A program made the position numbers and the translations under genes. 64,000 bases of DNA from Octopus bimaculoides (lineage: Eukaryota): assembly GCF_001194135.2 (NCBI RefSeq), contig NC_068997.1, positions 7,073,412-7,137,411 on the forward strand, in the 5' to 3' direction. The notes beneath the pieces were generated by a model. That model made no database searches and was not told the origin of the DNA. It was given only the letters and a program-made list of their open reading frames with translations. Within the stretch, counting starts at the first letter, position 1; each line of letters opens with the position of its first letter. Positions 22,501 through 58,500 of this stretch are shown here, piece after piece.

Positions 22501-25500
22501 TCTATCCGACATTCCTTTCCTGCAGTAATTTTATTCAATCTCCCCGAACCCAAGGGTCTGATGCTAGAAACTTATATTCATCTTCAAGGGTTTTAAAAAC
22601 TGAAAATTCAGTGGAGTCAGAATATTTTATGAAAAATGTGTACTTTTAGGGTGTTTGTCAAAGTTAGAGTGATTTGTGGTATAATGCTCGGCAAGATCCA
22701 CCAAGCAGTGTCATCGTGCCTGATGCCAATTGCCATTAAATTTTTTCACTTTTCTGTTGTGCAGCCAACATAAGCCAAGTTGTGTTTGGTGGGGCATTCA
22801 GCCGTGAACACCAAATGGGAAGCATTACATGCCCCACTTTCTGTTTAAATCTTCTGTTGCTTATTTGTTTCAATCATTAGACTGCGACCATGCTGGGGCA
22901 CTGCCTTGAAGAAGTTTTAGTTGAGTGAATTGACCCCAGTTCTTTTTTAAAGCCCGGTGTTTATTCTATTGATCACTTTGTTGAACTGCTAGGTTACAGT
23001 GATGTAAACAAACCACAAACCAACACCAGTTGTCAAGTGGAGAGACAAACAAACATACACATGATGGAATTCTGTTTTTCTAGGAGGTCCACCAGTCAGA
23101 AACTCTAAATGGGTTTTGACTACAACCAGAGGCGTCTTATAATAACTCTGCTTGTCATTTCTTAGCCCGTCGGTAATGCTTTCATGTGATTAGAAAAAAA
23201 GGAGAGAGAAGTGTCCATGACATGAGGCAGAGGGGATGTTAATTGTAACACTTTCATGTGATTAATTGAAGGGAAAGAGAGGAGAGAGAAAAAGAGTGAG
23301 ACAGAAAGAGGGAGAGAGAAGCATCCATGATGTGAGGGAGGGGGGCTATAATTTTTATTACGTAGTTAAAAAAGTTAGTTGAAGGTAGAGGAGGAGAGTT
23401 AATATGACTTTATCAGAGGGGTGGTGTTCTGATGGTGAGCTTAAAGAAAGGCAGAGAGGAAGAGAGAGAGAGAGAGAGAAAGAGAGAGAGAGATGATGTT
23501 AGTGGTGACTGGATAGTGAAAAGTGTATTTTTTTTTTATATCACTTAACATGTGCACATAAGTGCAATTCTGTGAAATATTCACACTTATTTATGTGGCA
23601 GATATTTGCAGTTTATCTAAAGATTGTATCATATGTATGAGATTTTTTTTTTTTTTAATGCGAAAAATGGAAAAATAAAAGTGAATATTTATTTTATGAG
23701 TGTTGTGTATTAAGTCTATAAAATTGTGCAGAAAGTATCATTAACGTCCGCCTTCCATGCTAGCATGGGTTGGACGATTTGACCTTGCACTGACCAAAGC
23801 CTTATGAATGGATTTGGCAGACAGAAACTGAAAGAAGCCCATCGTGCGTGTGTGTGTGTGTGTGTGTGCACGCATGCACATGCATGTGTGTTTATGTTTG
23901 TCTCCACCACCACTTGATAGCCAGTGTTGGTGTGTATATGTCCCCCGTGACTTGATAGCTTAACAAAAACAGATCAACGGAATGAATAACAGGCTTAAAA
24001 AACAAAGTAGCAGGGTCAATTCATTTGACTGAAATTCTTGAAGGTGGTACTCCAGCATGGCCAGTTTAATGGCATACAAATATAAAAGATAAACAGAAGT
24101 AAAAATATGCCCCTGTCCCTTAATAAAAAGAAAAAAGAAGTTACAGACCAGCTGAAAAAAAATGTATATATATATACGTACATTTATATAAACACAGAAA
24201 AAAAGCAAGATCAATAAACAAATAAAGGGATGTTTTTTTTTTATGTTAGAAGCAAACTAGCATCAGTGCAAGCAAGCATGCAAAACAACTACAGCAATAG
24301 CTATGGCTACAGGTATGAGGTAAATAAATAAACAAAAACAAAAATATTAACAAAAAGAGTAAAAGAATGCAATCATGGATTTATTGGTAAAAAAGGAAAG
24401 AAACAAAACGATTATTTCTACAATCACAAGCAGCAAGGGAAAAATAATATTTTACACAGACTCACACACACACACACGCTCATATATATCAGGTCCATCA
24501 TATATATATATATATATATTTTATTATATGTATTTATTTTCTCCTAATTAATAAATAACTCGGACAAAATAAATTGGTTAATAGATACCAGGGTAGCAAA
24601 GATCACAAAATAACTGTGGTGTAACTCCTGTTTATGAGGTAGAAACTCCTTGATATTTTGGGTACTTGAGTATATATAAATTTAATGAATGGAGTAAAAC
24701 GCATATTTTAACTGCACACTTTTATTTCTAACATATGTTTCGAAGAATTACAATTTATACGATCCATAGGAATCGGGGATGTTAAAAATGTAAACTTCTC
24801 TTCAGAGAAATGCATGGGAACTAGCTTAAACGTAAGACATTATAACCGAATATATATTTTTAACATCGCCGATGTCTATGGATTGTATAAATTGTAATTC
24901 TTCAAAACATATGTTGGAAATAAAAGTGTGCTGTTAAAATATGCGTTTTACTCCATTCATTAAATTTATATATATATATATATAGTCATAGATATCTGTA
25001 TAAACCTAAAAATACCTACAGTCATTACTTTTCACAAATGACAGTAACTTTGTAACCGATGCCATGCTTTTACTAATTTCTTTAACCAAAAAGTGACAAT
25101 GAAGTCAGAAGCAGACACATTCTCGATCCTCCCATCAGAATGTCTTCATTGATTACCGTACACAACATGCTTGGGTTTTGATATTTCTCCATTATTGTGA
25201 CGAGGCCCTGACTGAATGGCTGCATTTTGGAAGTAGAGTTCGGTAACAAAACAAAACACTTGACAGCTCTACCTGGCAGTCGTCCATACTGTGTGGTCCC
25301 CAGGTTGTCACACATTGCTCCAGTCCAACACTTTCTGAATGGACTCAATCAAGCAGGTACAAATTCTTCCCAAAAAACAAGATCAAAAAGTGAATATACC
25401 ATCCATGTCTTGTTTTATGACTTGTACTTCATGTTAAACGAGATCTTGTCATTATTCTTGAAGCAACATGGATTAATATATTATTGCACATGGACAAGTG

Positions 25501-55500: not shown

Positions 55501-58500
55501 AAGGCACAGTTTGTTGCTGCTGTTTAACCCCGAGTCAGACCTGATCAAGCAGATTTATGATCTTAAAATTCCAAACATGATCATCCTGTCTTTTATTCAA
55601 ACAGTCTAACATCTAAGTCTAAATACATTTCCTTTTTAAAGGCAATGGGATGGCTGTTATTTCTAGTAGGTCCAGCAACTAAGTAGAGATTTCTCCAGCA
55701 TTTTCCATATTAAATAAGTTGCCAATAATTGTGCATAGTAAACGAATTAATCCAAAGATCTTCATATTTATTTAGCTCTACAAAGCATCGCCACTCGTCT
55801 ATGATCCACAGAATGACTACAACAGTCAATCATACGACATCATTACAAATTGTATAACAAACAATATCCAAAAGGCAACAATAAACCCAATACTGCCTTT
55901 AGGAATGACTTCAATCATAAATCTAGGATACGGTAAAGCAAAGGACCCACTTCTAAAACCATTTAGTTAACCCACTGAAAATGGGCTATACAAAAGCATA
56001 TCCCCTTTTATTAGAATAGTTATTACAGTAATGCAAGCAGCTGTAGAATGTGAAAAAGCTAGCCTATTTGACAGAGAGTATTTTAGCAAGAGAATGGTTA
56101 TTCCATACAATAGTAACTTACACATATTTTATTAGAAAATTACTATTTGTAAATCTCACAACGTGAGATATTCAGCAACAGTACTTTGGAGTAAAGATTG
56201 TTTGCCAACATAACAAGGCAGTCCTTGTTTAGGACGAATGTTGCTGTAATTTAGCCCCAGCAGACATTGTCTCCAGCTGGTTATATGACACGATCTGTGT
56301 CCTTATACTTTCGAACAAGGGAATCTAACCCCCCCCCCCNNNNNNNNNNNNNNNNNNNNNNNNNNNNNNNNNNNNNNNNCCCCCCCCCCCCCACTCAACT
56401 CAAAACAATATCTGTCTCGCGATTTCTGGGTTATTTCCCTTCATCAGTACAGAATAATTGTTTGGCTGGAGACGATGTCTCCTGGGGCTATAAATTACAG
56501 CAACATTCATCTTAAACCAGGACTGCCATATTATGTTGGCAAATTATCTTTACTCAACACATGCCCATACCACCACACTCCATTCCCCCTCGCCAGCCAT
56601 TCCACCGATTCCTCCAACCCCAGCATCCCCATCGAGCCCTCAGTCCTCCTCTTATCAAACAGCCCCACACCACACATTTCTCTCGCCATTGCTCTCTTGG
56701 TCCTTCTCAAAATTACCATATCCACCCCCTCACTCCCATACAGCATGCAACTTCTATAGACCCTTCCTTTCATCTTCAATGAGAACCCTTTCCCATACAA
56801 CAAGGCTCCACCTTCCCTGCACTGCACCCAGCCAAGTCTCGCTCTTGCTGTCACATTCACCCTATCTCCCAAATAACAAAACCCTTTGACACAAGACGAA
56901 CTGCATAACTTCATACCTGAATGGTTCTTTAGAGCACATGTACTGGATGGAGTGACAAGATCCCAAATAAAGTTCTTTATCCTTTCATCGCCCTTATAAA
57001 ACTTCAAGCTGTACAGAAGCTGTCAAGAGAGAAACATAAACACAACATAGAGTGAGATGAGGTAGGGGGGAGCAAGGGGGTTAATGGCACAAAAGAGAAT
57101 CAAAGGAAACGGGAAATAAAGAAACTCAAAAGCAACAATGACAATGGTAACAATGCTTTCTTGGATTAGACATGTGGTTCTTTTGACTCAAGTAATGATC
57201 ACACAAAGGAAGGAATGAAAGTTGAAACCTGGCAGGATTTCAATATGGCAATGGAATCTGTATGTCAAGACGTTTGTGAAGTGAGCTTATGTGTACAGAT
57301 GAAAATATCCTATAGACTGTTGAGGACAGCTTTTAAAAGATCTTACAAAACACATTTTAAACAGTCAGCCACAGATACCATATACACTCATACCTACTCA
57401 CCCGCACAACGCCCAACTAATTAGGGAGAGAGTTAGTGTAGACAAGATGCAGTTTGGGTTTGTGCCAGAGAGAAGCACCACTGATGCTATATTTCTGGTA
57501 AGACAGCTGCAGGAGAAATACCAAGCCAAAGATAAACCTCTCTACTTGGCCTTTGTTGACATGGAGAAAGCCTTTGACAGGGTCCTCACAATCCCTTATC
57601 TGGTGGCTAATGTGGAAACTAGGGATAGATGGGTGGTTAGTGGGAACTGTACAAGCCATGTACAGGGATGCTGTCAGTAAGGTGAGGGTTGGCAATGAGT
57701 ATAGCGATGAATTCAAGGTACAAGTAGGGGTTCACCAAGGATCCGTCCACAGCCCTTCTTGTTCACCATAGTCCTCCAGGTGATAACAGAAGAATTCAAG
57801 ACAGACTGCCCCTGAGAGCTCCGCTATGCTGATGATCTTGCTCTTATAGCTGAGTCACTACCAGCACTAGAGAAGTTTCAGGTGTGGAAGCAAGGTTTAG
57901 AATCAAAGGGCCTTAGAGTTAAACCTAGCAAAAACCAAAGTCTTACTAAGTAGGAAGGCAGGCAAGTCACAAATCCCTTCAGGTTGATGGCCCTGCTCGA
58001 TCTGTAGAAAAGGCATAGGTAGAAACTCCATAGGATGTACCTGGTGTAAGCTATGGACACATAAGAGGTGCAGCAATATCAGAGAAAGGTTAACAGGGAA
58101 GATAGCTTTTGCATGTGGCAGATGCATGGGAACTTGGTGCAGCCCCCTGGCTTACCAGTTTTCAGTCAAACCATCCAATCCATGCCAGCATGGAAAGCAG
58201 ACGTGTGATGATGATAAATTCAGCTGGGACTCAGTACGTAAAATTATACTTCATGTATCTGTTTTGCTATCAGCAAATAAGTATTAAAAGTGTAACGTAT
58301 CAAATTAGATATTATACACACTCTCTCTCACTCTCAAACACACAACATGCTTCCATAAAGTTTTCATTGACTAAATGTTATCCACAAGGCATTGATCAAC
58401 CCAAGGCTATAACAGAAGACCCACGTGTGGGTATGAACTTGAAACCATGTGTTTGTAAAGCATCTATCACAGTATTAAAGGATATATCTATAGAATCATT

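Follow-up and report, generated by a model that had tools for sequence, protein, structure and literature searches.

A 64,000-nucleotide stretch of the Octopus bimaculoides genome (assembly GCF_001194135.2, contig NC_068997.1, positions 7,073,412 to 7,137,411; hereafter the window, with positions counted from its first letter) contains three families of short repeats, H1, H2 and H3, in which a hammerhead ribozyme motif occurs together with an inverted copy of the repeat's own 3' tail. The question raised by this locus is which machinery inserted such elements. An earlier note on the same DNA had regarded them as non-autonomous parasites of Penelope-like elements (PLEs) or as retrozyme-like units, probably misannotated as miniature inverted-repeat transposable elements (MITEs). 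As suggested by our analysis, H1-H3 probably represent three unrelated families of short non-autonomous retroposons, with units of about 180-250 nt, which carry minimal hammerheads of the PLE type and were inserted by PLE-style double-ended target-primed reverse transcription. All of them are intronic, in a window with a G+C content of 36.6% and nine assembly gaps.

Hammerhead motifs and inverted arms in three repeat families

A type-I hammerhead descriptor, in which the first strand of helix I is followed by CUGANGA, at most one extra nucleotide, helix II, GAAA, the segment A15.1...U16.1, H17 and the strand that closes helix I, was run on both strands of the whole window. As a control, the descriptor with permuted decoy cores (n=179) was applied to the same sequence, which preserves the repeats and hairpins actually present in it. 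When helix III had to be palindromic, with one mismatch tolerated, only H1 (24724-24811, minus strand) and H2 (43989-44030, plus strand) were recovered in the 64 kb, as compared with a mean of 0.034 loci per window for the decoy cores, none of which (0/179) gave two or more loci. When the G10.1-C11.1 pair was made obligatory, two real loci stood against 0/179 decoys. Allowing one core mismatch with a helix I of at least 5 bp returned H3a (34093-34138), one of the two H3 copies, along with H1, the decoy mean being 0.31. Hammerhead motifs are hence present in the window in excess over chance. A further hammerhead-like match at 40597-40670 (plus strand, CUGAAGA...GAAA) was discarded, having a helix I of 3 bp and no palindromic helix III and lying outside the repeats; it is probably the chance match expected of a relaxed descriptor.

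The full type-I definition (C3U4G5A6N7G8A9...G12A13A14, A15.1-U16.1, H17 and three helices in type-I order) is found exactly in H1 and H2. The hammerhead core that had been ascribed to all families therefore holds for these two, whereas each H3 copy misses one core element, A9 being changed to G in H3a and U16.1/N17 being lost in H3b. An extra nucleotide after A9 occurs in H2 (CUGAUGA-A-GGCUG) and H3 (CUGAUGA-A-GGG) and is absent from H1; the G10.1-C11.1 pair was found in H1 and H2. In all three families helix III forms a palindrome or departs from one by a single transition, the deviations being at CpG sites. Folding energies are unremarkable (z-scores -1.2 to -1.9), and the minimum-free-energy structures of H2 and H3a (z about -1.9) contain helices I and II.

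The architecture of the loci was examined separately from the motif. Among the non-microsatellite inverted repeats of the window with a spacing of up to 600 nt, the three longest are H1, H3b and H2; an unbiased architecture scan and an unbiased motif scan therefore single out the same three families. Their lack of shared primary sequence, already pointed out before, is borne out by our comparison, in which only words of 6-9 nt match between H1, H2 and H3 (E>0.1). Each arm copies the 3' end of its own unit, and in H1, H2 and H3b an inverted 5'-truncated copy adjoins the 5' end of the fuller copy within one insertion, so that the inverted tail copy reported for three of the four loci was found again in exactly those three. 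Arm length that varies between copies had been named in advance as the PLE-like outcome; the arms measure 122 nt in H1, about 90 nt in H2 and 93 nt in H3b, with none in H3a. Since H3a has no arm and H3b of the same family has one of 93 nt, the arm arises as a by-product of insertion and is no transposition signal. Tandem arrays of unit-length period were absent from 22000-57500 according to Tandem Repeats Finder, and self-BLAST detected no direct copies within the H1, H2 and H3 loci.

Structure of the individual elements

The element bounds proposed earlier were corrected for H2 to 43739-44078 (not 43764-44082), for H3a to 34085-34302/5 and for H3b to 56187-56557. The orientation given for H2 was reversed as well. 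tRNA-derived short interspersed nuclear elements (SINEs) are recognized by an internal RNA polymerase III (pol III) promoter of the form TGGCNNAGTGG-N30-35-GGTTCGANNCC (PMC8969392), and the minus strand of H2 reads TGGCGTAGTGA-N33-AGTTCGATTCC, a pattern with 0 matches in 20 shuffles. This promoter (43927-43981) consists of an A box at 43971-43981 and a B box at 43927-43937 with 33 nt between them, and its geometry is the same as in three other SINE heads of the window. Because the promoter lies on the minus strand, the sense unit runs from 43988 down to 43739 and comprises a head, a body and a 3' tail ending at 43739. ARAGORN called no tRNA in the window, and the head is a degenerate tRNA derivative that only the A/B-box scan detected. 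H2 is hence a tRNA-derived, pol III-type SINE with a hammerhead motif in its 3' tail.

The inverted segment of H2 (43989-44078, plus strand) corresponds to the terminal ~90 nt of the tail common to both copies, 5'-truncated and joined exactly at the 5' end of the unit, and holds the best-preserved hammerhead, cac-CUGAUGA-A-GGCUG..CAGCC-GAA-ACAU-U-gug, at 43989-44030. Its helix III, ACAU, is one transition at a CpG away from the palindrome ACGU, as had been proposed. The sense tail retains the 5' part of the motif at 43816-43851 (minus strand, CUGAUGA-A-GGCUG...CAGCU-GAAAC). Between the two tail copies the hammerhead region differs by three substitutions, two in loop 2 and one turning a G-C pair into G-U, with none in the core, and by an 11-nt indel through which the ACAU-U-GUG part is gone from the sense copy. 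The arms align in two pieces (43766-43818 with 44033-44085, and 43815-43851 with 43989-44025). The sense 3' end alone carries an extension of 33 nt (43739-43771, minus strand) that resembles the PLE-type 'tail' (cf. PMC8557442, PMC11167929), the alternative being an internal deletion in the other arm; no such one-ended extension was seen in H1 or H3b.

The whole H2 composite of inverted stub and full unit (43739-44078) is enclosed by a 13-bp direct repeat, TAAAGAACAGAAT, at 43726-43738 and 44079-44091 (plus strand). Through the neighbouring CHD exon a single homologue belonging to a related species was retrieved (P0001, 86% identity), whose 1.4-kb Logan contig (L001) aligns to both H2 flanks at 87-89% identity and has one copy of the 13-mer with nothing between the flanks, i.e. 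the H2 site is empty in the related species. The 13-bp repeat bracketing H2 and its single copy at the empty site thus identify H2 as an insertion with a 13-bp target-site duplication.

H1 (24671-24974, minus strand) consists of a 182-nt unit (24671-24852) and a 5'-truncated, inverted stub (24853-24974) that repeats the final 122 nt of the unit, the arms 24671-24792 and 24853-24974 being 93% identical over 122 nt. It lies within (TA)n, so that its target-site duplication could be anything from TA up to TATATATA. The hammerhead detected by the descriptor at 24724-24811 on the minus strand reads auuucu-CUGAAGA-[GAAG...CUUC, 57-nt hairpin]-GAA-ACAUAUGU-U-agaaau: helix I is formed by AUUUCU and AGAAAU, helix II (GAAG/CUUC) closes an imperfect hairpin of 57 nt, and helix III, ACAUAUGU, is a perfect 8-nt palindrome in agreement with the earlier description. 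The predicted cut after U17 would fall between GUU and AGAAAU, that is between 24729 and 24730. H1 contains no tRNA-type A/B boxes.

H3 is represented by two copies that are colinear with each other. H3a (34085-34305, with the end at 34302/5, plus strand) is a solo full-length unit without an inverted arm, possibly flanked by an 8-bp duplication (CAATATTT, 34077-34084 and 34303-34310). Its hammerhead relic, found at 34093-34138 on the plus strand by the one-mismatch scan, reads ucugug-CUGAUGG-...-GAA-AUCGCAAU-A-cacaga, with a 6-bp helix I, a helix II of GGG/CCC with a non-standard closing pair, GAAA, AUCGCAAU and A17. H3b (56187-56557) combines a full unit on the minus strand (56187-56461) with a 5'-truncated stub (56465-56557, plus strand) that repeats the unit's last 93 nt in inverted orientation. 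The relic within the full unit (56411-56453, minus strand) has an intact CUGAUGA and AUCGCGAG as its helix III. AUCGCAAU and AUCGCGAG are each one change away from the palindrome AUCGCGAU, which, as its earlier description as 'reconstructed' implied, is obtained only by combining H3a and H3b. The resemblance of H3 to a pol III promoter is weak (GAGCTGAGTGG ... TGTTCGAAAAT).

The arms of H3b align as 56189-56253 with 56491-56555 and 56252-56277 with 56465-56490. The inner end of the stub (56252-56277 / 56465-56490; counterpart in H3a, 34215-34240) falls within the element's own GGAGAC-GAT-GTCTCC hairpin (GGAGAC-GAU-GUCUCC in the RNA), which suggests that synthesis of the second H3b cDNA ended, or jumped to another template, at a stable stem. 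None of the assembly gaps listed with the earlier finding lies inside any element; one unlisted gap, 56340-56379, is inside the full unit of H3b, within a poly-C/G run with poly-C on both flanks, at a place where H3a has GGGGG. Because both sides are colinear with H3a and overlap on the G run, H3b can be taken as continuous across the gap, which is probably an unsequenced homopolymer. A fragment resembling a long interspersed nuclear element (LINE; 56534-57022, minus strand) terminates precisely at H3b's outer boundary, its reading frame entering the H3b tail by chance.

Probable insertion by Penelope-like machinery and competing explanations

The minimal hammerheads of PLEs have been described as having little or no helix III, which is palindromic, a short helix I, a longer helix II, an extra nucleotide between A9 and G10.1 and a conserved G10.1-C11.1 pair (PMC4209133, Cervera & de la Pena 2014); many are solitary, and pairs occur on opposite strands 100-700 bp apart (PMC4209133). 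H2 displays all of these traits and H3 most of them, whereas H1 is alike in its palindrome and its G10.1-C11.1 pair but is without the bulge of the extra nucleotide and has the 57-nt helix II. The likeness comprises the type-I core, the short or absent palindromic helix III, the short helix I, the occurrence of motifs in pairs, 100-700 bp from each other and on opposite strands, the extra A9/G10.1 nucleotide of H2 and H3, and G10.1-C11.1 in H1 and H2. The mode of insertion is alike as well. PLE insertions are recognizable by 5' truncation, by an inverted 5'-truncated copy lying beside a full one, by a tail of 30-40 bp restricted to one end, by target-site duplications whose length varies and by a preference for (TA)n (PMC8557442, Craig et al. 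2021). In the window, the inverted 5'-truncated copy, a variable target-site duplication and, for H1, a (TA)n target are found, and the 33 nt at one end of H2 may be such a tail. In contrast to PLEs, H1-H3 have no PLE open reading frame (ORF) or pseudo-long-terminal-repeat context, H2 has a tRNA-type promoter, the helix II of H1 measures 57 nt, and in H3 the motif occupies the unit's 5' end instead of the vicinity of its 3' end.

A purified PLE protein not only nicks both DNA strands but also extends them, and it initiates reverse transcription at two internal sites (PMC11167929, Frangieh et al.); these properties would explain the inverted copies as well as the optional tail. Under the proposed mechanism, element RNA would be copied by target-primed reverse transcription with the PLE protein supplied in trans. 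The protein would nick both strands of an AT-rich target and prime from both 3'-OH ends; one cDNA would give the full unit, and the second would stop after 90-122 nt and come to lie inverted at the 5' side. The outcome would be a locus with the element's 3' tails at both outer ends, the look of a MITE and a target-site duplication of variable length around it, while alternative starts of reverse transcription would produce the optional ~33-nt extension at one end. Within a master or tandem transcript, or across two RNA molecules, the hammerhead could pair via its palindromic helix III and would then cut after position 17. Hammerhead cleavage is not required for PLE insertion in vitro (PMC11167929), and any role the motif plays in H1-H3 may likewise be dispensable for insertion. 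The copies in the window are decayed offspring and probably catalytically dead, because the H3 cores are mutated, the sense copy of H2 lacks 11 nt and single minimal hammerheads are not expected to cleave as monomers.

Several observations weigh against this interpretation. The Rfam hammerhead models (Hammerhead_1 RF00163 and relatives) gave no match at the gathering score or at E<=10 over the 64 kb, and slices of 86-131 nt containing H1, H2, H3a or H3b likewise had no match when E<=10 was allowed. The minimum-free-energy fold of H1 is a local hairpin that buries the core, not a hammerhead, and its helix II is atypical in length. Helix I of H2 spans only 3 bp. Neither copy of H3 has an intact core, and the closing pair of H3 deviates from the standard by an extra A/G ahead of G12. 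The target-site duplication of H1 is hidden, as the insertion sits in (TA)n, and none is detectable for H3b. Each family is represented by 1-2 copies; a spurious-ORF route to more family copies, starting from a 66-aa frame of H3a, yielded no candidates, and exact-pattern scans of metagenome and viral collections with the H2 and H3 signatures gave no matches. No PLE reverse transcriptase is present in the window, where the reverse-transcriptase fragments look LINE-like, no PLE partner with a matching tail was found, and no link was found between the GIY-YIG-like remnant described below and either PLEs or H1-H3. The proposal of non-autonomous PLE parasites thus stands as far as the retroposon and PLE insertion signatures go, but the window supplied no partner, matching tail or reverse transcriptase for it.

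The foremost competing explanation, which we regard as unlikely, is that the elements are ordinary LINE-dependent SINEs, tRNA-derived in H2 and perhaps in H3, in which the motif is functional in transcript processing or a relic and the stubs stem from LINE-mediated rearrangement. The canonical tRNA-type pol III promoter of H2 speaks for it, as do the several LINE-type reverse-transcriptase fragments of the window, one of them abutting H3b, and the lack of a PLE reverse transcriptase there. A duplication of 13 bp is also what target-primed reverse transcription by LINEs typically leaves, and hammerheads are used by some LINEs and SINEs (review PMC6765202). However, in the twin priming of LINEs a segment located upstream is inverted, and no copy of the 3' terminus is placed at each outer end; the same tail-duplicating architecture recurs in three unrelated families. 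Moreover, the one-ended 33-nt extension and the minimal-hammerhead traits have been described as PLE signatures, and the element tails match none of the LINE fragments of the window.

Among the published systems compared, the closest analogue of H2 is Schistosoma Sm-alpha, as far as the summary of Ferbeyre 1998 and Laha 2000 in that review (PMC6765202) describes it. According to this summary, Sm-alpha and Sj-alpha are short retroposons in which, as in H2, a pol III promoter is followed by a type-I hammerhead. The Sm-alpha hammerhead, as portrayed there, is nevertheless canonical with loop-loop contacts, often tandem and detectable by Rfam, whereas the elements studied here are dispersed and have minimal-type motifs and inverted tail stubs. 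A stronger form of the PLE interpretation, which we offer only tentatively and hold to be somewhat doubtful, is that H2 and perhaps H3 are tRNA-promoter SINEs mobilised by PLE machinery and not by LINEs, that in this genome at least three unrelated families independently gained PLE-type hammerhead tails, and that a sizeable 'MITE-like' class of repeats in this lineage may consist of PLE-dependent SINEs generated through double-ended priming.

It is improbable that the loci are solo monomers of non-LTR retrozymes (LTR, long terminal repeat), i.e. dead single units of active tandem arrays located elsewhere that are transcribed, self-cleaving and circularising. Non-LTR retrozymes resemble H1-H3 in being small and non-autonomous, with type-I hammerheads, a proposed PLE dependence and common solo monomers (PMC7229834; bioRxiv 10.64898/2026.07.22.740005). 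A palindromic helix III would need a second copy for cleavage, and the published families have many solo 'monomer' derivatives (bioRxiv 10.64898/2026.07.22.740005; PMC7229834). Such retrozymes nevertheless form head-to-tail tandem units and circular RNA intermediates. Here none of the loci has a tandem copy, which leaves the 'retrozyme-like units' of the earlier note without a counterpart, the unit ends are off the predicted cleavage sites, the cut falling 48-57 nt inside the unit, and the pol III promoter of H2 is not a retrozyme feature.

Most improbable of all, and realistic only for H1, which alone stays compatible with MITE criteria through TA repeats that would accord with a TA duplication, is the idea of MITEs or foldback DNA transposons with coincidental hammerhead-like strings: it draws on the size of 300-370 bp, the long terminal inverted repeats (TIRs), the intronic AT-rich context and the missing Rfam match, but it is refuted most convincingly for H2 and H3 by the 13-bp duplication and tRNA-type pol III promoter of H2, by arms that differ in length and in H2 are unequal by 33 nt at the tip and 11 nt inside, and by the 'TIR' of H3b that is optional in the family and missing from H3a, while the motif excess over decoys is large.

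The earlier doubt about their MITE status was thus well founded for H2 and H3. Retroposition is favoured over cut-and-paste because of the 13-bp duplication and empty site of H2, its A/B boxes, its one-ended 33-nt extension and an arm that is optional in H3, and the evidence supports the view that H1-H3 behave as retroposons with PLE insertion signatures rather than as MITEs. The elements are new examples of a described kind, since ribozyme-bearing SINE-like elements, PLE minimal hammerheads and the idea of animal hammerhead repeats as non-autonomous PLE dependants have all been published (for the last, PMC7229834; bioRxiv 10.64898/2026.07.22.740005). If confirmed genome-wide, they would provide a clear invertebrate SINE-PLE partnership, in which a SINE head driven by pol III is combined with a PLE-type tail bearing a hammerhead, and a concrete case of PLE double-ended priming yielding loci that repeat annotators call MITEs. 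This would bear on transposable-element classification and on genomic hammerhead counts, as Rfam models miss these motifs; it opens no new mechanism.

The GIY-YIG-like remnant, the host gene and other repeats

A decayed GIY-YIG endonuclease had been proposed at 22560-22835. Our searches retain the decay and the membership in an ORF family, but the endonuclease assignment is sub-threshold in Pfam and no reverse transcriptase adjoins the fragment. The remnant (22575-22824, minus strand) contains stops and a frameshift and shows in its N-terminal half the pattern LVF..C..YVGCT ... AEHY..H. Pfam did not match the window's own frames at 22560-22835, and a frameshift-corrected composite found no word-sharing homologue. 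A full HMMER scan of 1.84 billion representatives retrieved two short ORFs, P0003 (E=3e-9) and P0004 (E=1e-6); P0002, a PPR-repeat protein from the same scan, was set aside as spurious. The contig of P0003 aligns to 22575-22824 with 67% DNA identity, and the remnant is therefore a decayed copy of a real small ORF family. Against the Pfam GIY-YIG model P0004 remained sub-threshold (E about 0.005, 17.6 bits vs a cut-off of 22.6).

A single cysteine lies between LVF and YVG, as compared with two in the PLE-specific (CCHH) arrangement. The GIY..C..YIGxT pattern occurs once against 0.03 expected, this pattern having been written after the sequence was seen. The family profile matched no GIY-YIG structure among PDB sequences, PHROGs returned only families of unknown function (E>0.01), and the AlphaFold2 model (pLDDT 33) was unusable. 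The label 'GIY-YIG-like' is plausible, though weakly supported. Intact ORFs of this family, 122-127 aa long, are found in two unrelated sequencing runs (L002 368-751 and L003 399-779); both contigs are shorter than 1 kb and their ORFs are flanked on both sides by stops, with an HCLLC motif just upstream in L003. No reverse transcriptase adjoins the fragment in the window, L002 or L003. A repeat of ~135 bp (22861-22997) has further copies near 32887-33019, 23972-24071, 35569-35671 and 19587-19660, at least five copies in all with 69-74% identity, and one of them directly adjoins the remnant.

The introns that hold H1, H2 and H3 belong to a CHD6-9-type gene coding for a chromatin remodeller on the minus strand, with exon-like ORFs at 62923-63297, 44271-45146 and 11829-13628 (minus strand) and Pfam HTH_CHD6-9 matches at 48461-48880 (minus strand, E=1e-33). 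H1, the sense unit of H2 and H3b share the orientation of this gene, and the host pre-mRNA would therefore contain their hammerhead strands.

LINE-type reverse-transcriptase or ORF2 C-terminal fragments (RVT_1 E=1.5e-5 and 9e-4) are located at 56534-57022, 60-1181 and 45299-45478 on the minus strand and at 57324-57677 and 49768-50169 on the plus strand. The three further tRNA-derived SINE heads, at 38790-38847 and 32149-32203 (minus strand) and 36056-36102 (plus strand), have A and B boxes with a spacing of 25-36 nt; they belong to families other than H2 and carry neither a hammerhead motif nor an inverted tail stub. Directly after the gap 37607-37874, an inverted repeat of 30 nt without mismatches that encloses a loop of 89 nt (37878-38026), likewise free of a hammerhead motif, resembles a plant-miRNA-like hairpin in Rfam well below threshold and may be a true MITE or foldback element cut by the gap.

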